Part shown: one piece after another, positions 1 to 63,626 of the stretch
Layout of the letters: every line of letters begins with the position of its first letter
Numbering within the stretch: position 1 is the first letter of the stretch
From: Takakia lepidozioides
Lineage: Eukaryota; Plantae; Bryophyta
Assembly (NCBI GenBank): GCA_030704615.1
Contig: CM060731.1
Span: 17,980,001 to 18,044,000 of the forward strand
DNA length: 64,000 bases
Direction: 5' to 3'
The notes under the pieces: model-generated
Told to the model about the DNA's origin: nothing
What the model saw: only the letters and a program-made list of their open reading frames with translations
Database searches by the model: none
Made by a program: the position numbers and the translations under genes

Positions 1-720
1 TAGAGAAGTATGGTTTACAATCTGTCTCAAAGTTGCCTACATTGTTCTGTTCTGTCATTTTTCTGAGTTGGGCACCACACATACAACTTATTAATCATAT
101 CTGCCAGAATAGATACTATTGCCCTACAAAGCTTGGATCCTAAGGCAATGATGATTGCATTCTTTTACTAGAGAGATGGTGCTGTGTGCGAGTGGAAGTG
201 GGAGGGAAGCATAGGTACTTAAGATGTAAACATAATTGTATAAAAGGAAGGTTGACTCTTGCTAAAACTCTTGTCAGGTTCCATGGGCACTCCCCCTAGC
301 CCCCAAGTGAATCACCCCAATTTCAAACCAACCACATTGATTGCTATAGAATACTTTCAAAGAGTGTCCCCATGAGTTGCCCCTTCCGACAGTGGCGAAC
401 TAAGGAAGGACGATAACAAGGGTGGCATGATTTAAGGAGAGCTTTGTATGTGACTCCACACTTGGGCCAGGATATGCATTCTCATTCAATTTCTGTTGGC
501 CTCTTGTGGTTCTCAACTTTGAATAGTCTCGAGTTATTGATTTTATCGCTGGCTTCAATCACCTCTTTTGCAAACCTCTCTTGCAAATACACTACACAGA
601 ATAGAGGTCGCTTGCCGGCAAAGCAACCTAGGGATAATTATGGTATAACTTAATAAATTTAAGACAAGGATCGGCCCTGCTTCACACTATACACTAGGTC
701 GATGCTTTACATACAATGTG

Positions 721-6700: not shown

Positions 6701-7260
6701 TACAGAGAATCCGAAAAATACCAGATCAACTGCATCACATGTACAGCATTATGATCTCTTCCTTCGAACTTTTCATGTGAAAATAAGACTGGAAAAACTC
6801 TTAAACCCACATTGCCCACTATATCCTCATCCTGAGGATTTCCCTAAATTTCCTACAACTATTCCACCTAGAAATTGAGGGCCGTTACACCGTGAAAGCT
6901 TTCCAATATCACAGGTTTCCTTTAGGGGAATAAGCCTGTGCACAATGTCAGTTACGAGAGTCGTCTTATCCCTCATCACCCCCAGGGAATTCCTTTCACA
7001 GAGACCGCAACCAGAACTTCGTTTCATATTGGCTGCAAGAACATTGAGTTTGGAAGAAGTACCTTTGATAGCAAATAAGGCTGCGGGTATGGATGCCGCT
7101 GGCGCAAGATGTAAAGCAAATCAGGAAAAAGAAATGTAGACAGCAGCGCTGCCAAGCTGACGCTAAGGTAGCCAGAGAACCATAAAAAGCGAACCATGGA
7201 ACCTCGAGATTTTGCTTTGCAGCGCCGAGCCAGCCCTGATGCACTTCCTTGTCGTTGCAT
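721..7260 (-). CDS. O-fucosyltransferase family (DUF246/GT106) glycosyltransferase, 12 coding exons, about 584 aa
   Basis: Exons with GT-AG boundaries and consistent phases: 7063-7260, 5643-5792, 5151-5214, 4863-4930, 4512-4600, 4025-4205, 3403-3531, 2547-2680, 2167-2380, 1590-1774, 1389-1484, 721-967 (1755 nt). Family motifs: [136 protein letters not shown]. The N-terminal hydrophobic segment fits a type II Golgi membrane protein. Confidence 0.93.
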
Positions 7261-8479
7261 GCTGGTCGAAGGATTTTGACTGTTTCGGGTACTTTTACCG
7301 ACCTACGAATCTCTCTAAAGGTGGGTCGGGGAGCTAGAATTAATAGTTCGCATATGTCTATTTCTCCATGTCTTCATCTACCCAACTCCAGGAGCACGTA
7401 GGTACTATTATCTTCGATGGATAGGTAGGTGCCCAATCGTGGATCTGTGGAGGTCCGAACCAAGCTGAAACTTCTCAATCGCCACTAAAGGAAATTCGTG
7501 TGTATGCACTGCAAGTCAAGACTTTACGGAGAGTTTGAGATCCTCAAAATCAGTTGCAGGAACCTGATCGCGCTGACAATTTTTGCGAAGAGGTTCTAGC
7601 GTTGCATAGACTCAAGGCCGTTCGGTTCCACAATTTTTTCCTCGACGTCGTTTCAGACCTTTCGCACTGGATAATTGTCCAAAGTATAGTGACTACCAAG
7701 AGATAGTGAAGAGTCCGTATGACAGCTATCCATTCTGGAGAATACTAATAAATATAGAGATATGATAACCCACATGCAAGAAGTGGCATGGAGATCGGAG
7801 GAATATGGAAAGAACAACGAACTTAGATCATATAACTTACAAATCTATACTTCGAAGAACTCATGTGCTTGTCTAGTATAATGAAGTTCCGCGCTGTGGA
7901 GAAGACGTCGTGACAAATGCACTTGACAAAGGAAGTCCTACGGAAGCAGATGAGGTGGGGCACAAAACCACGTCAGCGAAGTTGATCGCTGGAAATGGAG
8001 AACGAGCAGGAGGTTCGAGCGCAATCTGACACTCAGAGAATGGAGAATCAGAACGAGAATGCGACACACCAAGGGCCCCCTAAAAATCCAAGCCTCACGA
8101 TCGGACGCGTGCAGCGAAAGGCTACAGAATTTTCCCAACCTTACAAGACAGAGACGGTAGAAATATACAAGGAGAAAACTACAGGCGGTTCAAGTCTGCA
8201 ATGCAGCCGAGATTGGAAATAAGCCGTTACATGGCAGTGGGAGAAACGGCTCTTCAAATTCAATCCAGGATCACAGGAGGGAGTTACGAACACAATCCCG
8301 AGTCAAAACAGGAGACTCCCCGCCTCCCCGCCTTCACAGACACCAATAGCTGGCGCTAGATTCCAGCGGAAATGAAACTCTTGCCAACTTGCTTCCACCG
8401 GGAAAGGGGATGCCGGGAAAAATGCCACCACCACAGACATACATACATTCACAGAATGCAATCTCTTCAGAACACTTAC

Positions 8480-8950
8480 ACGTATTCAGCAAAACTAGAC
8501 TCTAGATCCTAGCAACCCCACCAGTTGAATCGAATCTCACTCACTCCCTTCTCTCCCTCTCTCAAACCCATGTAGCTCCTGCACACCCCACCTCCCCAGA
8601 CACACCACATACTCCTCCTTCCTCTCTCCAAAACCCATTCTTGTATCACCGCCATCTCTCCTTGCTCTCGCTCTCTCCCTTCCATGCGCGCTTCCGACAT
8701 GACTACAAACAGCGCGACGCGGGAGCCGAGACGGACCACGACACAGTAGCCGGCATTGCAGGCGCAGTGTAGGGCAACGCCACCAGCCCCGGTGTCGCCC
8801 GCTATTTGGGCGGCTCGCCCGCCCGGGCCCCACCGCGCCCGCCGCGTGTCTGCCGCCTGCCCCCGAAAGGCCTACCCGGTGTTTCGGCCTGCCTTAACGG
8901 CCGCGATTAGCCTCCTAATTTGCAGTTGACCCAGTCGGCCGAGTCTGGTG
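8480..8950 (-). promoter_or_regulatory. Probable 5' UTR/promoter region of the O-fucosyltransferase gene
   Basis: CT/GA-rich tract (8540-8690) followed by a GC-rich island (8745-8910), upstream of the minus-strand start codon. Positional inference only. Confidence 0.35.
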
Positions 8951-11900
8951 CCTAACTAACTTCCGCTTTGCAGTTGACAAACTGACTTCCCATGTAACCT
9001 ACATGCAGGTAATTCTCTTCTGGAAGGATGAATGCCTTGCCCACTGTTGCTACTGAAGTGGACTTTCAGTCGCCTCGGACTACTTACAAGTCTTCGCAAA
9101 ATCTTTGTCAGTTGGCGGAATAACTTAGCAGTGATCATCCGCACCATCGCACTTTGGGTAAGTTGCTGCTTATTACGAAATCGCTCCTGTTACTTGCGGG
9201 TGCTTTTGTTTTCTTTGCGGATCCTTGTGAATTGCATATTTTGTCCAATCCTCGCTAGTTGCTAGGATCCCGAACTGGGCGCTGGCTGTCGTAAGGCTTG
9301 TTTAGCCGCAAAATAGATCAACATTTTGTACATTGGTGCGCCTCCGTCACTTACACACACAATGTTATCGGTGAGGGAGTTTATCCACCGGTCCGATGGC
9401 TGCACAACTTCCATTGAACAACATCAGTACTGCTAATGAATTATTAGTGCTCTCCACACACATTTCATGTGGGTGCAGGGTTTTTTATTTTTATTTTATT
9501 TTGATATTAGGAAAACACCTGGGCGCGGCTGCAACTCAGGAGGGTTGTTTCAGTTAGAGGCAAAGCACAAAGAACCCACCTGCTATAATCTATCATCTAC
9601 AATCTAAAATAACCTATAAGCTATAGACTATAATTGTAATCTATGACAATCTATAGTAATCTATAATCCATAAAAAAAACAATAGGAATAATTAAGAACT
9701 TAATGCATGCGTGTCATCTGACGGTACTTTCGCCAGATTCAGGGATCCGGCTGGCCCTGTCAAATCCTCCCCACCCCCTCGTACCCACGAGTCATTCTTA
9801 AATGCTTTAGAATGCAGAAGTTTGTCAAGCAGTGGTGAGTAGCCTACTAGTAAAAGGGGATGGCAGTGTAGGCAGGAGCTGCGTTTGATTTCCGATATGT
9901 TGCTAGTGTAACCCCGTTCTGGGTTGCTGAAACCCTTGGCAGTGTCACCTTGTGTCTTGTGTAACTCCTCTTAGTCCATCTTGGACTTGTCAAATTTCGA
10001 GGCCGAGTGCGAGTTACATTGAGTGGAGGTACACTCCGCATAAGATGGTGTAACCCCCGGTGGAGTTTACACTCCATCCCATGTAACCCTGCAGTTCCAT
10101 GGTGGGGAAGATTTTGACGTGCCAAGAATCCGCGTCCGTCCTGTCAGAAATTGCACGTGTGAATTAAGTCCTAACATTAATCCTAGTATTCTCCAATTCT
10201 TAATCTGCAATTATAGTAAGCGGACATATATAGACACTATTTCTCATGCAGAATGATACTTTCATCCATGTGCGGCTTGAAAGAGGGAGGTTTTTTGTCA
10301 TCCGTCCATCATCCATGGCACATGGCACGGCAGATGAGCCAACCGTCCGGAAGTAACCGCGACAGGTAAGCCGGGTCCAAAAGCGACCCGGAACAGCTGA
10401 ACGTACCGACACTTGGACGTATAGAGAGGGCGCGTATATACGAAGTAGGTCGATAGGGACGGAGTACAGTACGGAGGGCGGGGCAGGTGATGGCCGGTAA
10501 GTCGCAGCGAGACGTTGACGGAGGAATGAATGTCTGGCGCACGCGCGTCGAGGAGCGAGGAAGGTGACGAGAGGGCTCGCAGATCGATGCTGCGCAGCCG
10601 GGCCTCGTGCAGCGTCGTGAGCACCACCGCGTCCTTCATTCCTCGCCCACGCAGCACGCCCGGCTGCAGAGGGGGGAATAATGAGAGAGAATTTGGGAAT
10701 CCGAGCTTTAATGGTGCCTGGATCACCGCAGGGAAGGGCCGTGCCTGCTAGGCTTTCTTTGATCTCTGATGCGCAGCGCAGAATGACAATTCAAAAGTTC
10801 TGAAGTAATATCAGTCAAGGAGTTACCTACTACTATAAGGAGCCCACCTTTTTTCCTGTACAGAGCCCTGAGTGTAATTAGAACTTCTCAATCTAGAAGG
10901 AGTAGAGTGAGAAGACGTGTGGGGTGAGAGACGAGATCAATTATCGAGATTGTTCTGCGTGAGTCGCTTTGCATGAGGCTATCGATCTGTCACTGATGAG
11001 CACCGCTATACAGATCAGTCCATTCCTCCGACGAAACCTGCCAAATGGAAGAAACCAGCTACCACAGGAATAGCTAGCACCGCTCAGGCTCCTCTGACTC
11101 AACTGTACCAACAGTAAGTTCCTCAGTTGACATGGGTGGTGTGGTTCTCAGCACATACCGCCATTTCCTGGGAGGAAATATAAAATACACAACACAATTG
11201 TCATCCTCCTCTCCTGCACCCCACAGATTCAGTCAATGTATCAAATTTGGCAGGGAACATAGCAACATGAGGTAAGCTAAACATGCGAAACTTTCGAAGC
11301 CACGTCTTCCTCCCTCGTTTGGGGTCCTCGAAGACTGTGTCATTAGCTATGTGCCAGCACGCCATCTTCCAAGGTTGGCCAGTTGCATGATGGTGGTGGT
11401 GGTGGTGTCATGAATGCTCCCTCCTCTACGATCAACCCAAATGCTTCACTAGTCAAGCAAAAACTCTTGTAAGCTTACACAGTCACCTCATTTGGGTCTT
11501 CTACAAAGCTTTACACAGATTGTCATAATGGGTGATCTTCTCTCTCACCGTCTCAGATTCGAATGGATTAGCATACAAGAAATCAGCAGGGTTTCATGAT
11601 TCAGAAGCAACCTCTCAAGTGACCTCCTAATAAGTAACCGTTTACTTAAGTCTTACCTCGGAGGCTCCACTCTCATCCCTCTAATAAAACTAGTACAACA
11701 ATGTACATGGGTCTTAACGTAAGACCGATCTACTCGGGATTAGGTCCATCATAAATGCATTTTACCTCGAAGTAGCCGTTTGCATTAATGTGTTCTCGCC
11801 ATGTACCATAGCCATGCCTCGTACCGTAGCAGCATGATGCCATCATGCATCATGCCCGGGTGGCTTTGGGGTCCGCATGTTGGCATCATGCCCATTCTGT

Positions 11901-12003
11901 ACACTCCTCCTCACTACTATAAATGGAAGTTTGTTTTATAGAAAAAAGGCTGATTCTTGTCGAAAAAAGTGTATATTATGGTGTCGCCATTCCAAAGTAT
12001 CGA

Positions 12004-12083
12004 CCAACAGTCAGTAGCTCAGTTGGATAGAGCACTGAGTGCCACCCACACGATTCTGGGGTCATATCCTGCTACATAGTTGG
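12004..12083 (+). other. Degenerate tRNA-like sequence (tRNA-derived SINE head or tRNA pseudogene)
   Basis: Contains an A-box/D-arm GTAGCTCAGTTGGATAGAGCA and a degenerate B-box GGGTCATATCC. Flanking CCAAC...GTTGG could pair as an acceptor stem. No recognisable anticodon arm. Confidence 0.4.
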
Positions 12084-12849
12084 CTGTTGTATGATTTTCT
12101 CCCCTTTCCCTTGGGAAGTGCCTCAATCGCAAGCCTTCAACACAAGGTTATTATGAAAGAGGTTGTTTTCTCCTCCCACTATAATTAAGGGGCATGATTT
12201 GTGAGCAACCGGATGTTAAATGACAACATCCAAAAATTGGAAGTGACTAGATCGGCTATCGATGAAAATAATCAAATAACCACCACCCAACAGTGGGTAT
12301 TGAGTGACTCAACAGCAGAGTTAAAAATGGCAGGGTTAAATGTGGCCATGGGGCTTGTTGGCCTTTTTTGTAAGAATTTAAAAAGTAACACTTCTATAGT
12401 AAGTTAGCACCATAGTCAAATGTGTGATAGAAATGGATGCATGACCATGGATGGAATGGCATCCCAAAATAGTCAACTAAACATACATAGGTTCATTAGG
12501 GGGCGAAGGGGGATAAATAAATAAGTAAAAAGGCTAAAAATGGGCTTAGCAAGAGGCATGGTAAATGAGAGTATATTAAAAGCAGGTAGTTGTTACATGG
12601 TGTCAGTAAAAATTCAGAGCATTGATTCAATTCACTGTGGTGCCGCTTCAAACTGATCACAATATTATGACTACATGAGGATCTCCCCTCTTGATCTTTG
12701 ACATCCTTCTTATCCCTCTCCCCTGATGATGATACTCCTCCGTTTGAGGATCAAGAGCGGAGAGGGACAAGACAGATTTCAAAGGCACAAGTTTCTGAAG
12801 GCATATCTGCTATGAGTGAGCTTCTCCATTGTTTGTCAACTGTATGTGG

Positions 12850-15800
12850 GTGCTCGGAAGTAGTCAGGGAAGCAAAACATGTGGTGGTGTTTTAGCCAGA
12901 AACTATGGAGGTTTGGAGTTCAGTTATCGGATGTCTGAAACTGTGTTCTGGGCCCCACTGAACAAGAGAGAGAGATGGTTGATGTAATCAACATGATGCA
13001 GACCTCGGTGTTCTCCCCATCACTGCATGATTCATGGTTGCCCATGAAAAGAGTGTGAGACTTGGTTTCCTGAAGAGCTGTTTCAAGCGAGTGATTTGCC
13101 ACAACAAGTGAGGAATATGATATGCAGCCCACCCAAGACGATGGAATCAACATGTGGTGTGTCGAGCATGCAAAGCCTCGGGGCAATATAATTGAACAAT
13201 AATTCATTGGCTCCCCCTCACATGCCATCACAAAAGTTGCTACATGAGTGTGCATGTTGTGGGCACTCCAGCAGCTCTGGAAAGCGACAAGGAAACAGTT
13301 TTGAGGCCCCTTCCCAATAAAACAAGACGGTGACACCGAGCATGATAAGGGAGGGAGGCCTACCCAGTCTGAGAGCTTGCCCACTCTTATGCACTTTTAC
13401 GCATCAGCAAGGGGACCCTTTCAACATTTGCTTGAGATTAACAATTGGAAAGTGGAGCCCAGGTGGCAAAGGCGCACGAAAGCGACAAAGTACCGTAGTT
13501 GTAGCGGGTGTTGCATTTGGTAGGAGTAAGGGTTCCTCTTCGTAGTCGAAATGAGAGATGGACTCACTATTCTGGATGATGAAGCTCCTTGCACAGGCCC
13601 AGAATCTCGTTTGGTTGTAGGGTCGTCTTTTCATTGTGTTGGGCTACTCAAACTTCCATATCATGTTACTCCAATCCATGTATGTATGTATAGGTCAGCC
13701 CGGTAGGACTTTGTTGGGCTTTTAGGAGATGTTTAAGGTCTGAATTCTGTTAAGAGACTGTGTGCCTGAAAGTACACAGTGAAGGACAACCCAAACATGA
13801 CCCGTCTGCAGGAACTCTGCAGGTATTTTTTGGGAGTAAGACCATGGACATGCAAGCAAAAGGACATGTGGGTTAGAAAGCCTGTCAAATGCATAACTCA
13901 TCACATATCTGGGCATGGCGATTGGAAGCTCCCTTCGTGGAATGAGGCTGTCCTTTGAAATGCAGAGAAATATGTTACCTTAAGATAGGCAATCACTGAC
14001 AGCTGACTAAGTTCCCAACCCTGGCATTGACCATCGAGGTCGGCGGACGAAACGTTGGAGCGTTGTCAGGTATTACAAATTATTACACTGCTCTCTCTGG
14101 TTGTCAGTGCGCAAGCACCTTTCCACGCTTCCTAAGGGGAGCCACATTCCAGAATCCACACTGCAAGGGGAGAATATCCAAATGCAAATCTGAATGTTGA
14201 GGGGAAAGCACTGATATGGTCTGGGCCTCTATGAAGTGTATTCCAAAGACCCTTGGTTGATGGTTCAATATTCCGACCTTTTCCGAGGCCAATCAATGTG
14301 GGCCCTGACCCCCACAAAGAAAAGGTACCCCAAGAACTTGGAGGGCTTACCTGAAAAGGTAGGTAGGATTTTACCTTCGTTTTGTGAATGAGTGCCTGAT
14401 CAAAATCTTGCCATAGCGGGACAATACAAGACAAGCTGGGAAGCTTTGGGCCTTTCCGTGGTCATTACTGGCTAAAGCCAAGCTCTGCACATTGCAAAGG
14501 ATGATTGTGTTTCCTGACTTCCAATCATCGTCATTATATCTGCAGTTTTGGATGGAAACAGGGAAGGCCTCAGTTTCCTTTTTCTCTCAAAACATGTCAA
14601 TAGTGGATTGAATGTCCAAGCAGAAGGGTGTCCCATCTCCCGTAGGACTACCTGATTCAGCGTAATCCATTCATGTCTTTCCTTGGTAGCATTCTCATAT
14701 GATCTGAAAAGACATCCACATTCTCTGAAGTAAGCAGTTCTTCCAAAAGTACCTTAACAAAGTAGTAAGTATGGCACACCAAACGCTCAAAACTGCATCC
14801 TGGGTTTCTTTAAATGTGTTTCTACCATCAACAATCGAGATTTCGATTTTGATTTTGATATTGCATTCATAGCATCACCGGCCTCACGTCAGAAACTATA
14901 CCTCTTCATGACCGAGCAATTTCAACTCTCGAGTCTCACCTACTTTGCAGAGATACTCGGTTCTCGTACCACACCTACTAACCTGGTACAGAGTAAATGT
15001 ATGATGATGATAAAAATAGTCTTGCAACCTTCACCTAAAACACGCACCTGAGTCTCCTGGGTACCATTGCCTATAAGTGGTAGACCACATCAAAGCACAG
15101 CTATATGCATACAATTGTCAGGGTACGCTCTTGGCTCAGAATCTTTAACCTTTTCAGGGATAAAACTACAAACATGACTTGTTTGTAGCGCTTAGCAAGG
15201 TACAAAGTACAAAGAAAAGACAAAGGATCTTACTTTTTCTCTGTAGTGAACGAGTCCTAGAATGTTGAAGAAACACTTCACTAAAACCAGTCCAAAGATG
15301 TGGCAAAGAGAGTTGGTTAGGTGAGATAGTTTGTAGTGATTGACTTGGTTGTTCAGTCTTTTGGGGTCCCACAATATCAAGGATTTACAGAGGACGTTAG
15401 CCAGGGCATAAAGTTAACAAAATGGGAAAGGGCAATACTTCTTCCAATCATCCTCAAGATGGTATGTTGTGTGTTGAAAGAGAGTAGTGGGGTGTGCTCT
15501 CAACAGTACGTTGAAACTCTAAAGGAATAGAAGAGAATGCTGCTGGTGATCAGCTGCAGACTGGAAGAAAATACAGTGTTGAAAAGGCAGCAGTGTAGAC
15601 TGGAATCCTAATTCTTGGTTATTGTGTTTGTGGTTAGCTATAGACATGTCCAATTTGGGTTTTTACAGCATAGAGTTTTCCCTCACCACCTCTCCTGCTT
15701 CATCCACTAGTGATTTGTGGATAAGTTGTGCCCCACTTCCCTTGTGGAGTCACCATAAAATACTACATTCTCATTGACTGTTTCTACTGGAACACAGACC

Positions 15801-17250
15801 ACTCCCAGAGGCAGTATGTTTAATATCTCAGAAACGGATTTAAGAAAGAGACCAGCATTCACTCACTACCCGCAGGCACAGACATCATCATGCTCTCTTT
15901 GGAGCTGCTGGCACAGGTATAGCACTGTGGTAAGAAGCCACAGCTGAGCTTCCAAGTCTATATCACAAGAATGAGATACGATGCCGATGAAGGTAACAGT
16001 GGGAACCTTTGTCTTTTCCAGGCAGGCTCCACCACAGCCCCTAGAAGGTCGACCCCTGCCATTTGTAGTCATGAATGCTAAGGCCCCCTCTCCACCAATA
16101 TCATGACCTTTTGTCATCAATGTGTAGAGAGTGTCATGTGCATAGAGACTGTCCTCCAACAACGAATATGCTCGAGGGATCCAGCCTTAGATCCCCTTGA
16201 ATCCATGAAACCCATTGGCCTGCCCAACATCAACATTCAATCGCGGCGTGTATTCATTAGCCGATGCTTATCATAGTCTTGTGGCCATAGGCCATGTGGT
16301 TCATTTGATTAGAGCAGAAAAGCAGAGATGGGCCCATGAGAAGAGTGGGTGAGTTCAACTACCAGCACAGGGGACTCCCTCTAGTGCTGGGAAAGGTAAT
16401 TCTGGCCTTCCAGATGCTTTTTAAGGAGGCTCTTTACCATAGCATCAATCAACACAATTCTTAACCAGAGCACTGAGAACCAAGGAGATCACAGAGTCAG
16501 CACCTTAGTTGACATGCTCATCCTGGGATAAACCTGAAGGCTATGCAAGAAGCTCCTACTTTGGTTTGAAAGCCTCTTCTCTTGGAATCACCTTGGGATC
16601 TCATTTGCACTGCTGGGAACACCCATCTCCCAGAGTGGTTGGTGAGGTTCGTGATGGCACAGGCACTCCAGTACTGAGCCTGCCATTTTGAAATGAAATG
16701 CAAGAGTCAAAAGTCACATCGACTGCTACAGAGCTGTACCTTTCCAGCCATATCCAGGGCACACGATATGGATGTCTCGATAAGAGGGCAAAAGTGGGCT
16801 GCCAATGGCTTGCACTTTGAAATACCAGATAATAGCTGTCTTGATGTTGGATGAAGTACAAGGTACTGAGATTGGCCACTGACCTCACTACTGTATCATC
16901 AAAGACAACACGTTGATGTGACAAACCCCATCACTCTTGCTGGCAGGAAACACTTGAGAGCTTGCATCAGTTCAGGCATATGATACAATGCCCACTTTCA
17001 ATCAGTTCAGCCCCATCTACTTATCCCAGGTGGCCAAATCTGATAGCAATATACATGCAAGCATGGCCACATTTCGAACTCTGTACATCAGCGGTGTCCT
17101 GGGACGGATGTGTTGTTCGCAGAGCATAGTACAAGTAGGTACCCAAAGCAAGGAATTCCTGATCGGCGAATGTGCAATGACATCCACCTGTCAGATATAA
17201 CCTTGAGAGAGAACAGTCCTGCACTGCACATGTCCATACAGGTACTTGCT
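12850..17250 (-). pseudogene. Heavily degenerate, intron-containing KDZ (Kyakuja-Dileera-Zisupton)-like transposase relic
   Basis: Collinear motif remnants on the minus strand: C-x-C...C-x-H (about 17060-17190), VPADGSCLG (D at about 13804), CT(H)...EGEP (about 13210-13255), FACSTH (YDxAC-like, about 13165-13180), FHG-NHESCS (13024-13050) and a frameshifted S-E-Q-L-N-S-K-like stretch (about 12912-12935). Many stops and frameshifts; boundaries approximate. Confidence 0.45.
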
Positions 17251-18169
17251 GTTACACTTCCTTGACAAAAGAATCAGGTTGCTAACATGCGTGAAATCTG
17301 AGTCTGGATAGATTCTAGCCCACACCCCTGCGTGTAAGAAAGAACCTCTCCCAGATTACTTAAATTTGACGACAGAAACTCTATCACCCCATCAAACCGG
17401 CACTACCTAATTCAGATTCTCCAGACGACTTAGCTTCAATCAATAATCTACGGAATTCACATTGTAGCTGTTTACAGAAACCCTTTCAAGCAAGCAGAAA
17501 CGGTGGCTTGTTTGATGATTCCAGTAACCTGGATCTGAGCCACTAGCAAATGTAGCTTAATTGAGTGCCTGTGATATGTTCCAGCAAAGCTTCCCAGGCA
17601 AACTTAAAACCACTTTAAGGAGCAACACAGTGCTTCTGGTGGCTTCTAAATTGTTCACCCCACTTAAAACTAATGAGCCGGAATGCATGTTGTGCTCATT
17701 ACCCTTGCGCATATGTCTGAAGGATGTGCCAAGGAAGTGAAACAGGCTTTTGAAAAACAAACCTGCATGTGCAGTTCAAGTGTAGCTTGTTAAGGAGCCA
17801 GCTTAATACCCCTTTGTCTTCACAGACTGCCTCGCTGGACAAAAGTGTGGTTAAATGGAGTTGCACAGGCAGAGGAGAGGATTGGTAGCTCCGCATGCAA
17901 GCCTAAGGCAGCAGTGACACATTTTTATTCCTGTACGTCGTGCTCAGATAGCATCCTTTCTAACTGGGTCTGAAGGATTGTCCAGTTTCTATCCATCTTT
18001 GTGCATATTCTTCAGGTGAATACGCAACACACAACAATTCGTTCGCATTTCCTCAGCTAATGATGGGTGATTTTGTTTGGGGACACTAATAGATACCTGG
18101 TCAGGATGTGCCGAAATGGAGTTTTTCTCTCAGTAGCAGATGAAGCTTGCGAGATATTTGCTTTCTCAG

Positions 18170-19290
18170 CTATTCACTGCCCGGTGTGTTGCAAGTTGTG
18201 TGGCATCAAGTGTTTTAGGGTTTTCTCACACCTGAAAAGCAACATAACGGAGTGCTAATTCTGTATCATTGGGAACTACTTGCACAATGGCTGTCAGGGG
18301 ATTCTGAGTTTTTGCTTCCCACACGGCTTTGCTCCAGTGATGATCAATGGTCATGCACTGCTTGGCTCCAGAAAATTCTCCGTTAAAGCAAAGAACCCAC
18401 CTCATGAATTGCGCACAATACAAGTAGGAAGACAACAAAGCCCAATAGCAGCAGAAATACTGGCTGTACTGCATGATAAATTTGGACTGAATATGCTACA
18501 GGAGATGTACTTCCAAAAACACTGGATTTCGAAAGTGGAACCAACCAGCTCGCATTCAAGACTTCCAGTCCCGATATCAGAAGACGCTCCGGCGGATTGT
18601 GCACCCAATGTTCAGGCTTCCCAAGAACTGGGTCAATGTCTCCATGCTGGCCCCTTTCACAGGAATTGGTGCTCCCCAACCCACCACCCCTTCCACTAGA
18701 TCCTTGCTCGTACCTCCCGGCACAATGCTGTCATTCCTATGCTTCACGATGGACAGGAATGTAGCAGCAAGCCCTGATATATGGCTAGAGAGGGGAATCT
18801 TGGTGGGCTAGTACATGACGAAGACGACAACCCATGTGGTTTGCATAACGAAAGCCCTGAACGGACCGTTTACTAGCAAAAAAACATTCGTTCGTTCCGT
18901 TTTGGGGTTGTGTTTTGTCCGAGTGTGCAGAGTGTTGCAGCGGCGTTGCAGAGAAGGGGATGGTCTTGGGAGGGGCACGCGTGCCTGCGTGTGAGTGCGG
19001 TCCGGAAAGAGGAAGGGGGCATGATGGTGGGAGAGCCCGATGCTTCAGTTGAGGAAGGAAGGGGCGGAAATGTCACTGTGCACGCGCGATGCTCTAACGG
19101 CAACAAGTTCCCTGGTATGTGCGGGAGGGAGCCGTTTTGCGGATTAGAAGCTTAGCTAGGTTGCTGGGTTTTTCTCCTAGGAGTGTCTAGTCAGCTTGTA
19201 TTCCCCGTTCTCGTGGATGCCAATTGGGAGAGCAAGTCATGGCAGAGTTTGTCGGGTGCTTGCATTTTCCGCAAAGGGTAACGTCTGAAG
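18170..19290. repeat. Direct repeat copy 1 of the ubiquilin upstream region plus truncated exon 1
   Basis: Collinear near-identity with 23279-24590, for example ACACCTGAAAAGCAACATAACGGAGTGCTAATTCTGTA and GGAGAGCCCGATGCTTCAGT. Lacks about 170 bp of ubiquilin exon 1 (most of the UBL domain). The junction reads CCTG|GTATGT, a canonical donor at 19115. Confidence 0.92.
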
Positions 19291-19517
19291 GAGACCAAAT
19301 TTCCCGGCATAGAGAATTTCATCGCATGGCAGGGAATGTTTGGATTGAAGGTTCTCATCAAGCCTGATATTTTGTGTGCAGTTGAATGCGCTCATAGGCA
19401 TGTGCTGATGTATAGAGCCTATGACGTTCTAGTGCACCTTCTCCCAATTCGCAGTTAGGCCTGTAATATTTTGCACCATTCAAACTGGACTGTCTATGCT
19501 ACGTCAATTTCATTACG

Positions 19518-21128
19518 ATGGCTTTACAAGATGAGATTCTCTTCGAGACCCAAACTTTCAATGAAGAAACCACTGGCTATGGAGCGCCACAAGGGCTGGT
19601 TGCTGGGCGAATTTACAAACATGGAAAATGGACAGCAGCTGAGACAACGATCTTGGTGGAGTGCAAGCGAAGGGATTGGGAAAAGCATGGACCTGGGGCA
19701 AATAGGAGAACTTTGATGAGCACAGCCGCAGAAAGGTGGTCAGCAATGGAGGAGGAAATGGCTAAGCGTGGAGTGTTGCGATCCAAAAACCAAATCCAGG
19801 AGAAGTGGGAGCAGCTGTCGGCAGATTTCAAGAAAGTTTTTTATTATGAAAGACGCATCCCCTCTGGTCGTCGGAGCTATTTTCAGATGAATCCTCAAGA
19901 GAGAAGAGAGAGCACTAGCCCTAAATTTCCAAAATGCCTCCTTGATGAGGGTGTGTACAAAGCATTGTGCCAATGGTTTCCTCAAAAATCACAGGCTGTT
20001 GACCCAGGAAACCTCCCCATTGATTCATCAAGGAGACCAAGCAATAGAGGTACATTCAATTGAAACCGTGCTTGAAAACTTTGGCAGTAAACCACATCTG
20101 GTGAACTGTTTTCCCAATTTTGCACATGGTTAGAGGATGATGCTACTACTTGCTCTAACAGTGTCGGATCTTTGAGTGCCATGACATTTTTGAACGGGAG
20201 AAACGGCGTGACAGTCCTCTCTATCTAAAACTCCACTGAAAAAGAAAATGTGAACACTCTTTAGGGTGGCAGGTCTACTTCATTATTTTGACAGTTTTGC
20301 ACATAGGCACTCTTGATTGCTCCTTACTCTCACAGTATTGGATCTATGCGTGCTTTTGGAAAGCTATGGTTGCCACGGTCCTCTGGGACAAAAATCTGGT
20401 GGTCAAAAAATCTGAACACTCTTTAGGGTCCCCCCCCCTGATCTGGTTCATTATCATGATCGTTTTGCACATAGGCATTGTGCTCCTTACTTGCTATCAC
20501 GGCATTGGATGTTTGAGTGTTATGGCATTTTGGAATGCTAGGGATGCGATGGTCATCAATGTCAATAAATCTGCTGGGAAAAGGAATATGAACATTCTTT
20601 AGGGTGCCCCCCCCACCCAGTTCTGTTGACAGTTTTGAGCGTAGGCACACTTGATTGCTATGGCATTTTGGAATGATAGGTATGCCAAGGCCTCACTGTC
20701 AAAGATTCTAATGGCAAACAATATCCAACCACTGGTTAATGTTATGTTTAGGTAGCCCCGTGGAGGAGGGTCAGTCTTCCCAGGATGGGGGAGGGGATCA
20801 ATCTAGTGACATCCACAACACCAAGAAGCGCCGGTTGTCTGCAAAAGTTTCCGAAGAAGCTATTTCAGCAATGGAAAATAACAGGAAGGAGATGGTGAAT
20901 GCAATGTTCACGGGACAAGATCGTGAAGATGTTCGGCACCGAGAATCAATTGAATTGGAGAAAGAGCGAGTTCACCGAGAAGACACTCGCCATCGGGAAA
21001 TCTTGGATCTTGAAAGGGAACGCCTGGTGCATACCACTGATTTGGGACGGGGTTACATAAAAGCTCTATTAAGTATTGGGGAGGGGTTAAAAACCATTGG
21101 AGAAGCAATGAAAAAACCTGGCAATTGA
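19518..21128 (+). CDS. Myb/SANT-like trihelix DNA-binding protein (Harbinger ORF1 type; SH4/ASR3-like trihelix signature), 2 exons, about 302 aa
   Basis: Exon 19518-20049 (donor AG|GTAC) splices in frame to 20752-21128 (acceptor TTTAG). Trihelix tryptophans in WTAAET...RWSAMEEEM...RSKNQIQEKWEQLSADFKKV, followed by SYFQMNPQERR...VYKAL. Also a KKRR putative NLS and a C-terminal coiled coil (ELEKERVHREDTRHREILDLERERL). Confidence 0.85.
20245..20760 (+). repeat. Three degenerate tandem copies (about 160-180 bp) inside the trihelix intron
   Basis: TGAACA(C/T)TCTTTAGGGT...GTTTTG..TAGGCA recurs at about 20251, 20413 and 20589. TATGGCATTTTGGAATG recurs at 20521 and about 20659. Confidence 0.7.
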
Positions 21129-21266
21129 AATCAAAGAGTTATTCTTGTTCCATCTCTAGGATATGATGTAGTTTGTTCATATGATCATGGAGTGGTAGCA
21201 CTAGAGCACTACACTCTGACTGTATCAATTTAAATTGAAAAACTTTATTGATGAAAGTGTACTGCA

Positions 21267-22601
21267 TCAAGGAGACAAATGTTTGGCCATGACCATTTGC
21301 AGTTGTTTTGCTTCATCTACAGTCGTTGTATGAGAGTACTCGTTGCGGTAACCCTCGTCATGATGACCCCACAAAACAACAGACTCATCTATTTCTTGTC
21401 TCCTGTCTATGATGATGTTGTGCAGGATACAACAGGCGGAGATTAAATTAGGAACTTTGCCCAAATCAGGGTTTACCATGGCAGTCTTCAGAATGCGCCA
21501 CATTCCCTTGAGAATGCCAAATGCACGCTCAACCACCATCTTTGTGGAAGAAAGTTTGTAGTTGAACTGGTCGTAGATTCCTGGAAGATTTTGACCAGGC
21601 CATGGAACGAGCATGTGTGCACTACCGATATATCCTGCATCTCCAATGATAAACTCTTTGACTTGCATGCCTTCAATTTCCACTACTTGCCCATTCAAAC
21701 GTTGTCCACTACAAACAAGATGGAAGTGGGGAGAACCGCTGAAAACCTGAGCATCATGCATAGACCCTAAACCTACAAAGACATCCGTAAACCTGACTTC
21801 TGCATCAACAATTGCCTGAAGAATCATGCTGCAATTGTGATCTCGATCATAATAGTCGGACATTCGCATTTTCTTCGAGAGCTCCAATGGTATATGGGTG
21901 CAATCAATGGCACCACAACATTGTGGAATGCCATGGAAATTTTCGAACCCAACCTTTACACGAGCCAATTCCTCACCCTCAGGCCAATGGAGGTGTTTTG
22001 GCATGGCCCGCTGAACCAAAGCCTTGACGAACCTTCCGCAAACCTTGGCACATGTTGAATCAGCAACCCCGAACATCTCCCCCACTGTCATGAAAGAATC
22101 CCCGGTGGCAAGGCGCCTCAAAGCAATTGCGACCTGCTTTGGGATATCCATCCAACGTCCAACAATAGTTCTCAAGCCTGGAGGAGGTCTCTTTTCCAAA
22201 TCGGAAGCAACAAGGCCACATATGTATTCAAATGTGGGAACAGAGACACGAAAGAACTTCCGGAATCGGTCAAGATCCTCGGTCATAACAAGATTTGAAT
22301 ACTGGTCCCACCAATGTACAGATCTGGGCTTGATATAACACGGGCCATAATCAAGACCAAGAGTTTCAGTCTTTGTCGCCCTTTTCACAGCAACTGCATA
22401 CGCCAATTCTTCATGGTCTTGCATCACACTTACGATTGGGCCCCAATTTAGTCTACTGCTTTTCCTCTTGAGTCCTCTACTTGAAATTTTGTGAGAGGGT
22501 CTCTTTTTTAAATCCTCTTCAGTGGCAAGTTGCATAGCCGTACCAATAGCGGCACTTGCTGCAATCAAAGAGGAATAAATAGCCTCACTCTTGTTACTCA
22601 T
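21267..22601 (-). CDS. PIF/Harbinger DDE nuclease (HARBI1/ALP1-like), 444 aa from the first ATG
   Basis: Uninterrupted ORF. Motifs FRKFFRVSVPTFEYIC, KQVAIALRRLATGDS (HTH), CCGAIDCTHI (D, 21903-21905), HDAQVF, IIGDAGY (D, 21639-21641), VVERAFGILKGMWRIL (E, 21528-21530), ACCILHN. A splice acceptor TTTGCAG at 22623 implies an upstream exon. Minus-strand AATAAA at 21244-21249. Confidence 0.93.
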   Translation of the reverse strand: MSNKSEAIYSSLIAASAAIGTAMQLATEEDLKKRPSHKISSRGLKRKSSRLNWGPIVSVMQDHEELAYAVAVKRATKTETLGLDYGPCYIKPRSVHWWDQYSNLVMTEDLDRFRKFFRVSVPTFEYICGLVASDLEKRPPPGLRTIVGRWMDIPKQVAIALRRLATGDSFMTVGEMFGVADSTCAKVCGRFVKALVQRAMPKHLHWPEGEELARVKVGFENFHGIPQCCGAIDCTHIPLELSKKMRMSDYYDRDHNCSMILQAIVDAEVRFTDVFVGLGSMHDAQVFSGSPHFHLVCSGQRLNGQVVEIEGMQVKEFIIGDAGYIGSAHMLVPWPGQNLPGIYDQFNYKLSSTKMVVERAFGILKGMWRILKTAMVNPDLGKVPNLISACCILHNIIIDRRQEIDESVVLWGHHDEGYRNEYSHTTTVDEAKQLQMVMAKHLSP

Positions 22602-23278
22602 ATCGTTCTGTATGCTGTGAAACTGCAAAGCCCAAAGTCAGTTGCCGTCAGAGGTGAAATCATCATGCATGTGTTGACTTGAAGAAGAAATGCATTACAT
22701 GGACAGAAACGGTAAATAAGGAGCCAAGCCTGGTATACGAAACTGAAGCACTATAGTGCCAAGCAGAAACGAGGATGGAGCAAATCCCCTGCGCATTTTC
22801 TCCATAGAGCGACACAAGACAATATTGACAATCATCCAGGGAGTTACTCCAACACTAGAACAAAGGGTACAACTTATGAGCAACAATGATTCTTCAAATA
22901 CTGAGCATACATGTGAACTATTGCCAAGCTTCACATCCTAAAATGACACACAAATCACTGACATATAGGGAGGATGAATAAAGCAGCACAGAGAATGCTC
23001 CTGTTTGGAGATTTTGATTAAGAGAACAGACGGCCCCCAACAGTGCTCTCTTTGGGAGATGTACATGGACAGTTACCTTCACAATCACAATTTACAAGCG
23101 TACAACAAAAATGGCTGCTTGAAAGACTAAAGATAAGTTTCACAACGTCATAATTGGGCAGATAGATAACCCTGACTATAAGACAATGGAAAAACCTAAA
23201 ACTGAAGAGCTTCATTCATCAGGCAGTCCCAACGCTATGCAGAAGCAGACTCTCCGTAATCTCAACTTCCCTCAACAC

Positions 23279-24590
23279 TATTCACTGGCCAGGTGTGTTG
23301 AAAGTTGTGTGGCATCAAGTGCTTATGGCTTTTCTCACACCTGAAAAGCAACATAACGGAGTGCTAATTCTGTAAGATTGGGAACTACCTGCAATGGCTG
23401 TCAGGGGATTCTGAGATTTTTCTTCCCACACGGCTTTGCTCCAGTGATGATCAATGGTCATGCACTGCTTGGCTCCAGAAAATTCTCCGTTACAGTAAAG
23501 AACCCACCTCATGAATTATGCACTATACAAGTAGGAACACAACAAGCCCAATGGCAGCAGAAATACTAGCTGTACTGCATGATAAGTTTGGACTGAAAAT
23601 GCTACAGGAGATGTACTTCCAAAAACACTGGATTTCGAAAGTGGAACCAACCAGATCGCATTCAAGACTTCCAGTCCCGATATCAGAAGACGCTCCGGCG
23701 GATTGTGCACCCAATGCTTCAGGCTTCCCAAGAACTGGGTCAATATCTCCATGCTGGCCTCTTTCACAGGAATTGGTGCTCCCCAACCCAGCCACCCCTT
23801 CCACTAGATCCTTGCTCGTACCTCCCGGTACAATGCTGTCATTGCTATGCTTCATGATGGAGAGAAATGTAGCAGCAAGCCCTGATATATGGCTAGAGAG
23901 GGGAATCTTGGTGGGCTAGTACATGACGAAGACGACAACCCATGTGGTTTGCATAACGAAAACCCTTAGTAAATGGGAACGGACCGTTTACTAGCACAAA
24001 AGCTCTTTCTTTCTTTTTTGGGGGTTGTGTTTTGTCCAAGTGTGCAGAGTGTTGCAGCGGCGTTGCAGAGAAGGGGATGGTCTTGGGAGGGGCACGCGTG
24101 CCTGCGTGTGAGTGCGGTCCGGAAAGAGGAAGGGGGCACGATGGTGGGAGAGCCCGATGCTTCAGTGGAAGCAGGAAGGGGCGGAAATGTCACTGTGCTC
24201 GTGCGATGCTCTAACGGCAACAAGTTTCCTGTGGCTGTGGATTTGTTGTGCACAGTGGGGGAGTTGAAGGGTCTGCTTGTGGAAAGATCTGAGATTCCAG
24301 CCCTCCAGCAGCGCCTCATATATAAAGGCCGTGTGCTCAAGGATGAGAATTCGCTTGATAGCTATGGTGAGTGTACTTGGCCGGCTGGTTTGGTACGGTG
24401 TCTATCCGGGAGGGAACCGTTTTGCGGACTGGAAGCTTAGCCAGGTTGCTAGGTTTTTCTCCTCGGAGTTTCTAGTCAGCTTGTATTCCCCGTTCTCGTG
24501 GATGCCGCAGAGCAAGTCATTGCAGAATTTGTCGGGTTCCCTCCTGGTGCATGCATTTTCTGCAAAGGATAACGTCTGAGGGAGACCATG
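23279..24590. promoter_or_regulatory. Direct repeat copy 2: native ubiquilin promoter, 5' UTR, exon 1 and start of intron 1; likely bidirectional
   Basis: Matches 18170-19290. Lies between the divergent 5' ends of the minus-strand nuclease and the plus-strand ubiquilin. Carries a minus-strand splice signal TTGCTTTTCAG|GTGTGAG at about 23340. Confidence 0.75.
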
Positions 24591-27500
24591 ATTCTCGCCA
24601 TTCATTTGTCGGAGAATTTTCTCTGCTACAATGGCAGGAAATATTTATTGCTCCATCTGGTTTGATTTGCTTGTGTCTAATTCGGCATCCTTTTCCGAGG
24701 TTGAAGGGCATGAGTTTCCTGTAGGATAGCGCACAGATATTTTGATTTCTACTTTTACAGGACATCAGGTGTCAATATTGTGGACATGCTGGTAGGAAGC
24801 CGCTGTAATTCATGTACATGGCATCGTGTACTTCTGGAAGCCATAGGCTTAGGAAGGTGGAAAAGTATGAAGAGGGTGGAAGCTTTTGTGCTGTTTGATT
24901 CTTAACACATGCATTTTGAAGCGAATAATGTAGAGAATAGTAATAAGCCAAGACTGTCAAGGTGTGGGGATAGTGTACCATGCAACCTGCAGTAGAGTAG
25001 ATGTGCTTCTTTCGGAATGCCCTCTACCCTGATCTGGGTATCTTGGTTCTATTGACCTCATCATGGCGAATCTGCTAAGGAGTCTGTTGCCCTCATGGTT
25101 GCTTGTATGAATTTCTCTTTGGGTACAGTCCCTAGCTGTATTTTTGGAGTTGAAACCAACTCAAAAATCATAGCTGAGAAGCTGCTGAATGAAGGGCATG
25201 GTGGCAGGCCAGACCTTACCAATTACAAGTTGAACTTGGGTTGTGCAATGTATGTTGTTGTGTGAGTTCCAGTGAAATTTTCACCATGCATGTCATGCTG
25301 TTGACGTGACCACGATCAATTGATGCTACCAGGGTTACAAGCCGAGCACACGGTGCATCTGGTCCGCGGAGCGCCATCAAGTTCACCGACGTCAGGTGGT
25401 CCTGCACCCATCTCTGTTCCAACAGCAGTCTCTGAGACTTCAGCTGCTCCAGAAGCCAATCCTACAGGTTTAGGGCTGGGGGACCTTGGCTTCCCTTACT
25501 TGGGGGAAATTGGCGCAGGTGGCACTGCTGGTGCTGGGTTTGGCACGGGGTCTTCTGATTTTCAGCAGGTGCAGCAGCAGCTGATGCAGAATCCCAACCT
25601 CATGAGAGATATGATGAACATGCCAGCAGTGCAAAGCCTGATGAACAACCCAGATCTTATGCGCACCTTGATCATGAGCAACCCACAGATGCAGGATATT
25701 ATTGACCGGAATCCTGAACTAGCCCACATCCTAAATGACCCTGGAACGCTTCGACAGACTCTGGATGCCGCACGGAACCCAGAACTGATGCGTGAGATGA
25801 TGAGGAATACTGACCGTGCTATGAGTAACATTGAGGCTTCGCCAGAAGGATTCAACATGCTGCGGCGTATGTACGAGACAGTTCAAGAGCCTTTGTTGAA
25901 TGCAGCTACCATGGGAGGGGAGGGAGGGAACGACTTGTCCTCCAACCCATTCGCAGTTTTACTGGGTGGTCAGGGACTTACACAAGCAGCAGGCACCACT
26001 GCCCCGGAAAGCACTGGCCCAACTGGAGTAGGCACTGGAACAACAGTTCCCAACACTGCGCCTCTTCCAAACCCTTGGAACCCCACGCGTAAGTGTAGCT
26101 ATATCTTCTCCATCTTTGTCTGTGTTTGTATAGCTAAGTATCCTAATTCTGTTGAAGATATGCTGCTCTGTTGCAATTGTCTTGTCTGTCATCATCTTTG
26201 CTTGCTTAAAGAGTGAACCACCTGCCAATATGTGATAGGCAATATATTTAGGAGGGGAACCTCCTAGGTACAACTTGCTTTTGGTGGAAGCATGTGGTTT
26301 CAATTTTTGGACACATCTTGTGTTGCATTGCCCAGTTCGATTGCAAAGCCTGGAGGTACAGGACAGTGCTATTGTGAAAGCTGTGTGTATTTGTAAAGCA
26401 TGATTGGATTAGCGTTCGACTGCCAAGACTTAATATAGGAGGCACCCTTGGATGGCCTTTGTTGAGAACAGCTCCTCTACAGGTTCCCCCTTTGTTCTTT
26501 CTGCCAGCACTGACTAGGCAGAGATTCTATCAATGGTTGGCCAAACCCTCTCTGTACTTGGTGGACATTCTGGTTAAAGATGTATCAAAGAGTTGCAGTG
26601 CCCTGCAGCAACCTCATAAACCATGGCCCTTGCCTTGCATGGTGCAAGCCATTAGATTTACATCCAGCCTTACTGCCTTGGTTTATGCAACAATGGCAAC
26701 AGCTATTGGCGCTGATGCAGGTACTGGAGGAGCAACTGGAACTGTACCCTCTAGAGGGGCGGGCATGGGACTACCTGTCTTAGGAGGGCTGGCAGGGCTT
26801 GGCTTGCCAGACCTTGGGACATTGAATGGAGGGGGCCTTGTGGATCCCGCCTCTATGCAGCAGATGTTGCAGAACCCGGGCATTCAGCAGATGATACAGG
26901 GGGTGCTATCTAATCCTCAGTACATGAATCAGGTACAGCCCTGGGTCACAAATTTCACTGTCTGGCTTGGCCAGTGTCTTTGTGCAGTTCTGATCACACC
27001 TCAACTCACGTGGTGGGCGAATATGGAACATGGTCTGGTACTGGCCAACGGTTTGGAGATCTATGAAGAGGGTTAGTAAGGACAAGCTACAAGGTGTTCT
27101 TCAATTTCCACCAGGTCTATGTTGGAATGATGGCATGGCATGCATCGGGTGTGCAGGTGATGAACATGCAACCACATCTTCGCACTTTGTTGACTGAGAA
27201 CCCTCAATTCAGGGAAATGATGCAAAGCCCTGGTTTTGTCCAACAGATGAGCAGTCCGGAAAGTTTGCAGGTACACCCTTCGTGTCGTGCTCTCTTCTTG
27301 AATTATTGTTTAGCCTTTTTGTAGATATCATCTGGTAAGGCTACAGCATGGAGCATCTTACGCTTACACCTTTGTTCCACCCAGGGGTTGCTAGCTAACC
27401 ATGGCTGCAGGAATTTGTGGATGAGTGCTGCACGGATATTATAGGGGGCTATGCATGTTTGGAACCTGAAAGGTCAAAGTGTGATAAAGTAGGCAATGAG

Positions 27501-29116
27501 GAGTACTGTTGAAAGAGTCTGTCAGAGTATGATACTGAAATCCTAGTGTTCCAATATCGTTGATCACAATCCATCTGTATTTCGTTTTTCCTTCAGAAGC
27601 TTGAGAAATGTCAAGAGTCCACAAACATATTGTTTACATTTTGAGCTGGTGTGGGTACGGTAGTTAATTTTCTGTGTCTGCATGTGTAATGACCAGCAAC
27701 TGATGCAGCTCCAACAAGCTATGTTTGGCCAACGGCAGGGTCAGCAACAACCTGGACAGTGAGTGCTTGATCCTCTTCAAATCCCTTGAACAATGAAGCT
27801 GTTTCTGTGTCGATTCAGCAAACTACTACGGGGTGCATGCTAGCATCCAACCAAATAACTATTTCTTGATAAGGAATGGAGATAGAGATGTCTTCAGACA
27901 GTTTTCACTGGTGTAGCCTTGCTGCACCTCCACTGCAGTGCATATATCCTCTACCTTGTTGTTATGGATTGCTCCTCACCCTTGACAATTAGAGCACTGT
28001 GTTGTTGGCATGCCATGATGAGAATGACTGTGCACACCAATATACATGCTTCATTGTGTCGTAGTGCCATGTGCAAATAGCGCTGATAAGCTTATAGAAC
28101 TATGTGCCGGACCCATCTGACCACAGTTTCATGACCTAAACTAGCTGCACTGTGCCATGCAAAATCTGGATGACCATTTCGTGTTGTTTGCGCTGCTAAT
28201 TTCCCTACTGTAAAATTTCATCATTAGACATAAGCTTCTGTCATGTTTGTTTATCATGTGATATACCACAGGCTGTGTCAGCAAATAGCATGAGGTTTAT
28301 TAACCTGTATTGTGGCAGAACTCGGGGACAAACTCAAACTACCACTCCTGCCAATCCTGCCTTCGATATAAGCTCACTCCTTTCTATGTTTGGGGGCCTT
28401 GGCAATAACCTGCCATCTACTGCACCTGAAGGTCAGTGTGACCGTAAAGGCATCTTGGGGTTCTAGAGCCATGCATGCAAGCATTGTAAGAAGGTTGTCT
28501 GTCTTTTTGCCTGTTTGGTCGGAAAATTTTGTGGACCCTTGATCTAGGGTGGGTTAATCAGCTCCTACAGTGTGTGAACATGAAAGATGGATATGGTGAA
28601 TAATTTTTCATGGACACGCTGTAGTTTCTAGTTGAAGGTTTTGTAGGGCTATGTTTGTAATACCCACCGTCTGCATGATGGCATCAACAAAGAACCAAAT
28701 GACTGTGTGCAGCTTTGTCATGTGAATAAATGCAGGGACTCACATCTGAGGGGATTTGATGCTAAACTAGCTTAGTAGGCTTTGACACATTAAGCTGCCT
28801 CAGCAGCCTCATGGACCAATATATATGACTGTATGGAGTGCTGTACATTGTGCACAGACCAGCATTATAAACTCCAGATAGAGATCCTTTTTGGACAGGA
28901 TTGAACTGGTTGGTAAGTACTCTTCAGGACCTTTTGTTGACCCCATGGTTGTTGGCTGCAGTAAACACAGTTCCACCAGAGCAGCTGTATGCATCACAGC
29001 TCTTGCAACTCCAAGAGATGGGTTTCTTTGACACACAGGCTAACATTCGGGCTCTCAGTACAGTTGGTGGAAATGTGCATGCAGCTGTTGAGCAGCTCCT
29101 GCAAAACCTTGGTTAA
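24141..29116 (+). CDS. DSK2: Ubiquilin / DSK2 ubiquitin receptor (UBL-STI1-UBA), 7 exons, about 551 aa
   Basis: Exons 24141-24366, 25333-26088, 26703-26932, 27157-27270, 27697-27758, 28319-28431, 28962-29116 with consistent phases. UBL: [29 protein letters not shown]1 repeats: [35 protein letters not shown]: [26 protein letters not shown]...[12 protein letters not shown]. Confidence 0.95.
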
Positions 29117-63600: not shown

Positions 63601-63626
63601 GACCTAGCGATGCAAGCAACAGTCAC
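60612..63626 (-). mobile_element. hAT transposase (BED finger, DUF659, hAT dimerization domain), pseudogenised
   Basis: CNLC..H..C BED finger, ICADGWS (D), CTDNAANM (D), GCAAHILDL, ETRFAT, WW..G..P..RILAQVCSASSCERNWS (E), K.RNRL. ORFs 62373-63626, 61968-62354 and 61533-61967 are one frame broken by two TGA codons; a frameshifted acidic tail runs to about 60612. Acceptor TTTATAG at 63627 and TATATAA at about 63887-63893. Confidence 0.92.

Follow-up and report, generated by a model that had tools for sequence, protein, structure and literature searches.

The window analysed here is a stretch of 64,000 nucleotides (nt) from contig CM060731.1 of the bryophyte Takakia lepidozioides (assembly GCA_030704615.1, positions 17,980,001 to 18,044,000); all positions below are those of the window. 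It contains two genes derived from a Harbinger transposon, one encoding a DDE nuclease and the other a Myb/trihelix protein, and on either side of them a direct copy (R1 and R2) of the 5' end of a ubiquilin/DSK2 gene. The two copies are ~95% identical (93–96%). We favour, with slightly better than even confidence, a local segmental duplication of the ubiquilin 5' end that brackets an immobile, selectively retained pair. Purifying selection probably acts on both genes, co-domesticated or at the least retained by the host as a pair: the repeats have gathered ~5% substitutions and ~1 insertion or deletion (indel) per 100 bp, with no indel length divisible by three, whereas both genes have stayed intact. 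An earlier sequence-only reading had compared the repeats to long terminal repeats (LTRs), and had proposed that one duplication gave both transposon genes the same bidirectional housekeeping promoter. The direct repeat itself is present as that reading described; the promoter proposal fares less well.

The duplicated ubiquilin 5' end

The limits of the two copies are slightly wider than first described (18171-19341 and 23280-24646; Table 1), and on these limits repeat finding, MAFFT, blastn and global alignment all agree. The copies had been called ubiquilin upstream region, which they do include, but the duplicated unit runs from ~860 bp 5' of the ubiquilin/DSK2 ATG through the start codon and exon 1 and on for 280 bp into intron 1. 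Its left edge is sharply defined. The motif CTATTCACTG opens both copies, and is possibly preceded at both left edges by a 4-nt CTCA microhomology. Local alignment of the two left flanks with each other is no better than that of shuffled sequences, and past 19341 and 24646 the alignment scores are also no higher than those of shuffles. No third copy of the repeat was found within the 64-kb window.

The main block of the alignment between R1 and R2 contains 44 mismatches in 938 aligned nt (Kimura two-parameter distance, K2P, 0.0485) and 8–9 small indels. At commonly used plant neutral rates, which are uncertain for this lineage, a K of ~0.05 suggests that the duplication is a few million years old. 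Divergence is not uniform along the repeat. The intron-derived part (19122-19310) has a K2P of 0.11, approximately twice that of the main block (10.3% vs 4.7% differences, Fisher p=0.005). At the other extreme, a block in the 5' untranslated region (5'UTR; 18900-19021) has just 2 differences in 122 positions (98.4% identical), a departure that is not significant taken alone (p=0.11). An exact search of the JGI metagenomes with this conserved block returned no match. The left 730 bp of the repeat contains no Pfam family, and all of its reading frames are interrupted by small indels between the copies. Tandem Repeats Finder reported nothing between 17000 and 25500, and no Rfam family was found in the window.

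As judged from their sequences, R2 is the working 5' end of the ubiquilin/DSK2 gene and R1 is a dead gene fragment, since R1 has lost ~170 nt that comprise 45 codons of the ubiquitin-like domain together with the donor region, and carries non-conservative changes (the core first-beta-strand residues LV of R2 are HA in the R1 remnant). All four splice-like strings proposed in the sequence-only reading are found at the positions it gave (19115/19454 and ~23341/22623). The GTATGT at 19115 coincides exactly with the deletion junction in R1. The remnant at 19024-19114 ends in phase 1, as does the true ubiquilin exon 1. If the GT at 19115 were used, an in-frame splice to ubiquilin exon 2 (25333) could, from a reading of the frames, yield an isoform that lacks most of the ubiquitin-like domain.

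The comparison with LTRs does not stand. The repeats are the 5' end of a host gene, exon 1 included, and the genes between them encode a DDE nuclease and a Myb protein rather than gag and pol. We infer that the duplication is neither LTR-like nor the product of ordinary transposition.

Table 1. Positions of the features discussed, with the evidence on which each was delimited or assigned.
Feature	Position	Strand	Description	Basis
R1	18171-19341	+	Left copy of ubiquilin 5' region: upstream sequence, 5'UTR, start codon, 30-31 codons, part of intron 1	Alignment to R2; right end by shuffle test
R1 CpG-rich promoter/5'UTR core	18800-19114	+	22 CpG, observed/expected ratio (o/e) 1.01; oriented to Myb gene	
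Ubiquilin exon 1 remnant in R1	19021-19114	+	ATG at 19021 and 19024; 30-31 codons; ends in phase 1; deletion junction next	
Unique 3.94-kb block	19342-23279		Harbinger-derived gene pair; no terminal inverted repeats, no TAA/TTA duplication at ends	
Myb/trihelix exon 1	19518-20049	+	177 codons + 1 nt; Myb_DNA-bind_4; Trp38, Trp74 and Trp97 kept	Pfam PF13837, 3e-10
Myb intron	20050-20751	+	GT...AG; about four degenerate ~170-bp units	
Myb exon 2	20752-21128	+	Charged, coiled-coil-like tail; stop at 21126-21128	Frame continuity across GT/AG junction
DDE nuclease gene	21267-22601	-	Single exon, 444 amino acids (aa) from ATG at 22601; D233, D321 and E358 intact	Pfam DDE_Tnp_4 PF13359, 1.2e-26; alignment; tree
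Nuclease 5' flank	22602-23279	-	678 bp, CpG-poor, 16 ATGs, acceptor-like site at 22623	
R2	23280-24646	+	Functional copy, runs on into intact ubiquilin gene	Alignment to R1
Ubiquilin exon 1	24141-24366	+	75 codons + 1 nt, phase 1, ubiquitin-like domain	Pfam ubiquitin, 3e-15
Ubiquilin intron 1	donor 24367, to 25332	+		
Remaining ubiquilin/DSK2 gene	25333-29116	+	UBQLN1/STI1 region; UBA-type end at 28901-29116	Pfam UBQLN1, 2e-33; open reading frames; atlas matches to Streptophyta DSK2 clusters

The enclosed Harbinger-derived pair

The Myb and nuclease genes are arranged tail-to-tail (convergent), with stop codons 138 bp apart, and the nuclease and ubiquilin genes are head-to-head, with ATGs 1540 bp apart. 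No second copy of the block that carries the pair was found within the 64-kb window. The sequence-only reading had noticed no pair of terminal inverted repeats (TIRs), and none emerged here: for four candidate pairings of the ends no score rises above shuffle expectation, and repeat searches with several seeds are equally blank. Target-site duplications (TSDs) of TAA/TTA are present at neither junction (~19342 and 23279/23280). Neither of the two features that would define a normal mobile element was found, and the sequence supports an immobile gene pair. The lack of transposon ends agrees with the earlier suggestion that the element lost mobility, and the open reading frames (ORFs), both intact despite the diverged flanking repeats, speak for retention by the host.

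All three catalytic residues of the nuclease (D233, D321 and E358) fall in conserved columns of the alignment, forming a complete D-D-E triad. The N-terminus of the protein aligns with the N-termini of its closest homologues, so an upstream coding exon is not needed. Its closest named matches are ALP1 proteins, with 40–43% identity. In a maximum likelihood tree (quick mode, with long branches and without a labelled transposon outgroup) the nuclease forms a four-member clade (SH-aLRT, the approximate likelihood ratio test, 98) with two proteins from moss metagenomes and one from ENA. This clade is sister to a vascular plant clade of Psilotum, gymnosperm and angiosperm ALP1 and ALP1-like proteins. 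The branching order resembles plant phylogeny, and would fit an old, vertically inherited nuclease gene.

The two exons of the Myb gene were searched separately, and were joined only in local scripts (for frames, upstream ORFs and the neutral-decay estimate described below). Homologues of exon 1 form a small family with 48–64% identity, the same start methionine and conserved tryptophan residues, among them a gene of Ceratodon purpureus. Exon 2 matches no Pfam family. The units of the intron (20097-20720) are 65–85% identical to each other, and a 20-nt stretch in exon 1 (19919-19938) is complementary (84–85%) to a motif that recurs in them.

The mutation density of the repeats provides a neutral expectation for these genes. 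Per lineage, the 2244 coding nt would have received ~10–11 indels, with a probability of ~2e-5 to 7e-5 of receiving none. The two coding sequences should in addition have acquired 2–3 stop codons, and the probability that no stop or start loss occurred is 0.04–0.07. In both coding sequences, neither a frameshifting indel nor a premature stop is observed. Intact ORFs are still unlikely if the indel rate is cut four-fold. We infer that the duplication does not predate the pair; the one scenario that would break this order is a subsequent insertion at the precise point of a tandem junction.

Several points weigh against this reading. The selection argument assumes that the pair dates back as far as the repeats, that indel rates are equal in coding-like DNA and in promoter or intron DNA, and that no gene conversion from an active copy elsewhere has overwritten the genes. 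With divergence uneven along the repeat (4.7% vs 10.3%), its age may be obscured by gene conversion or by constraint that differs between its parts. A complete DDE triad and intact tryptophan residues would also fit a transposase pair that is still active. Finally, the nearest nuclease relative with long flanks (L003, 45–49% identical) is solo and adjoins a phosphomannose isomerase gene, so that it offers no sign of synteny. The relative occupies 9824-11404 of a contig apparently from a moss-associated metagenome; its third catalytic residue is changed from E to D, and the phosphomannose isomerase gene lies on the opposite strand. Among 80 related nuclease-bearing metagenome contigs, none carries a Myb partner of the family found in the window and none carries a ubiquilin gene.

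Possible promoter capture and the origin of the arrangement

The CpG island of the repeat is restricted to its ubiquilin-proximal 550 bp. The core of R2 homologous to that listed for R1 in Table 1 contains 18 CpG (o/e 0.85), against a local background of ~0.3, and nine CpGs are private to R1 compared with three private to R2. With a CpG-rich core that includes nine private CpGs, R1 does not have the look of a methylated relic. The core lies ~500 bp from the Myb ATG and in the same orientation, with 176 bp of unique sequence between R1 and that ATG. As far as sequence can indicate, it is consistent with promoter capture on the Myb side. The stronger form of this idea, in which the ubiquilin promoter of R1 drives or boosts the Myb gene only while the nuclease relies on its own flank or on an ordinary divergent intergenic region, would account for an island-like core kept at least as well as that of R2 and aimed at the nearby Myb ATG, for the near-identity of the 5'UTR block, and for the short unique spacer. 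We nevertheless regard it as unlikely, although it is the foremost of the alternatives. The excess identity of the core is, as noted, not significant, and a transcript initiated in R1 at the start site of ubiquilin would contain 16 upstream ATGs if unspliced, or 7 with the proposed splice from 19114 to 19455. These include the ubiquilin ATG, in strong context, which in the spliced leader opens an upstream ORF of 56–57 codons that overlaps the Myb ATG out of frame.

Extending capture to both genes, as the sequence-only reading did, is very improbable. Here rightward starts in R1 and leftward starts in R2 would be spliced into the Myb and nuclease genes, respectively, and the two would be co-regulated. 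The 5' side of each gene does face a copy of the repeat, donor- and acceptor-like strings are present on both sides, and the pair looks selectively retained. The sequence does not, however, support a bidirectional promoter. Left of R1 no gene was recognised and the 4 kb there contain no Pfam family, so that leftward promoter activity would have no ancestral target; the left 630 bp of both R1 and R2 are as CpG-poor as bulk DNA (o/e 0.32–0.39), and the 678-bp flank of the nuclease is likewise no richer than bulk DNA. The nuclease, with a flank of its own and an N-terminus complete without any upstream exon, gives no sign of needing a captured promoter. The specific spliced leaders also lack support: in addition to the upstream ATGs on the Myb side, the proposed nuclease leader contains 8, the last of which opens a 12-codon upstream ORF overlapping the nuclease ATG. 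Nor is it supported that a single duplication gave both genes a promoter: if the pair was already beside ubiquilin, there was a gain on the Myb side only. CpG depletion was also considered as a proxy for silencing and was discarded, as the whole region is depleted and the measure fails to separate the pair from the ubiquilin exons.

The duplication could also have been made by the transposon. A Harbinger element that was then mobile might have produced it, either through alternative or reversed-ends transposition with one copy lost afterwards, or through an insertion that duplicated a very long target, and have been immobilised in the process too recently for decay to show. The DDE triad and DNA-binding tryptophans are intact, the genes are adjacent as in an autonomous element, and class II elements are able to create tandem direct duplications (PMC3744419). 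The ~1.2-kb direct duplication of host DNA seen here, 93–96% identical and associated with class II sequence, resembles such products. In reversed-ends transposition of Ac/Ds and other hAT elements, however, the order is transposon-segment-transposon-segment with diagnostic TSDs (PMC3744419). The model requires a transposon copy before each segment, and the order in the window is segment-block-segment, with one block that has neither termini nor TSDs. Reversed-ends transposition was accordingly discarded as a direct match. TIRs should remain visible in a locus whose repeats have diverged by 5%, the decay expected of a neutral copy is not seen, and the nuclease falls not among multi-copy elements but in a clade whose branching mirrors plant phylogeny. 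A young rearrangement of this kind is thus improbable, if less so than capture by both genes. Least probable of all is an artefact of assembly, in which diverged haplotypes or collapsed reads were joined and one 5' region is shown twice. Mis-joins can yield duplicated flanks around an insert, but the 64-kb window does not contain any N, the copies differ by the 170-nt deletion, 11 small indels and 5–10% substitutions, their left edge is abrupt, and a unique 3.9 kb separates them. These features make for a poor fit to a simple haplotig overlap.

The favoured reading, a local segmental duplication around a retained pair, could have come about in more than one way. The pair may have been resident, with a templated copy of the repeat inserted on its upstream side, or may have been co-inserted in a one-step duplication-insertion, by staggered breaks or replication template switching; a transposon-mediated event would be a third route. 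The functional effect is likely to be confined to the Myb side, where R1 may serve as an extra unmethylated promoter or enhancer 5' of the Myb gene. The nuclease probably relies on its own flank, or on an ordinary intergenic region that it has in common with ubiquilin.

Surrounding sequence and relation to known Harbinger pairs

Across most of the window (1-64000) CpG o/e is ~0.3, the ubiquilin exons included, with islands at ~8–12 kb, 38–42 kb and 58–62 kb. This depletion suggests, from base composition, a heavily CG-methylated genome. To the left of R1 (1-18170) there is almost no ORF longer than 100 aa and no Pfam match among the ORFs tested, and the region may consist of degenerate repeats or contain a small-exon gene. 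Ty3/gypsy-type remains are found at two places. One, at 37442-39589 (minus strand), has a chromodomain and Tf2-type SH3 domain at 37442-38014 and RNase H at 39074-39589; the other is an ORF with a zinc knuckle at 54873-55838 (plus strand). A 417-aa ORF at 62373-63626 (minus strand) matches DUF659 (9e-38), a domain typical of hAT-type transposases.

Co-domesticated PIF/Harbinger transposase and Myb/MADF pairs that are still adjacent have been described in insects, namely APLG/APM in Anopheles and LPLG2/LPM2 in Lepidoptera (PMC9710019). As in the window, the two genes of a single Harbinger insertion have been kept next to each other, their ORFs intact and TIRs and TSDs absent. The pair described here differs in that it is found in a plant and is bracketed by the duplicated 5' end of a host gene, which is not described for the insect cases. 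In Arabidopsis, ALP1/ALP2 (PRC2-associated) and HDP1/HDP2 are domesticated Harbinger pairs; the three DNA-binding tryptophans are missing from ALP2, whose gene is not next to that of ALP1 (PMC7282668). In the tree, the nuclease of the window falls in the sister clade of the vascular plant ALP1 and ALP1-like proteins and its partner is also of Myb/trihelix type, but this partner keeps its tryptophans and the two genes are only 138 bp apart. The catalytic residues differ as well. Among the aligned angiosperm ALP1 sequences the second D and the E are lost in P0011 and P0069, and the E is lost in P0018, whereas all three residues are present in the window. A DDE_Tnp_4 transposase with an intact triad beside a gene for a Myb-like DNA-binding protein is also what an autonomous PIF/Harbinger element contains. 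In contrast to such an element, the block in the window has no TIRs and no TAA/TTA duplication, and its ORFs are intact despite bracketing repeats that have diverged by 5%.

On a more ambitious reading, the locus would capture a moment in the co-domestication of a Harbinger pair in a non-seed land plant. A nuclease related to the ALP1 progenitor and still catalytic in appearance would have become fixed beside a housekeeping gene, together with the DNA-binding partner to which it is still linked, and a later 1.2-kb duplication would have wired the CpG-island promoter of ubiquilin to the partner. We hold this only tentatively, as an account that is more likely wrong than right by some distance. 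If it is true, it would provide a concrete route for a transposon gene to acquire host-type expression, a step in the domestication of transposase genes that can rarely be watched under way. Should R1 indeed drive the Myb partner, this would be a promoter gained through local duplication of a neighbouring housekeeping promoter, in a plant Harbinger pair whose two genes, in contrast to those of ALP1/ALP2 and HDP1/HDP2, are still linked. What is solid so far is less far-reaching: the local duplication, which is dated, acts as an internal clock and indicates selective retention of the pair it encloses.

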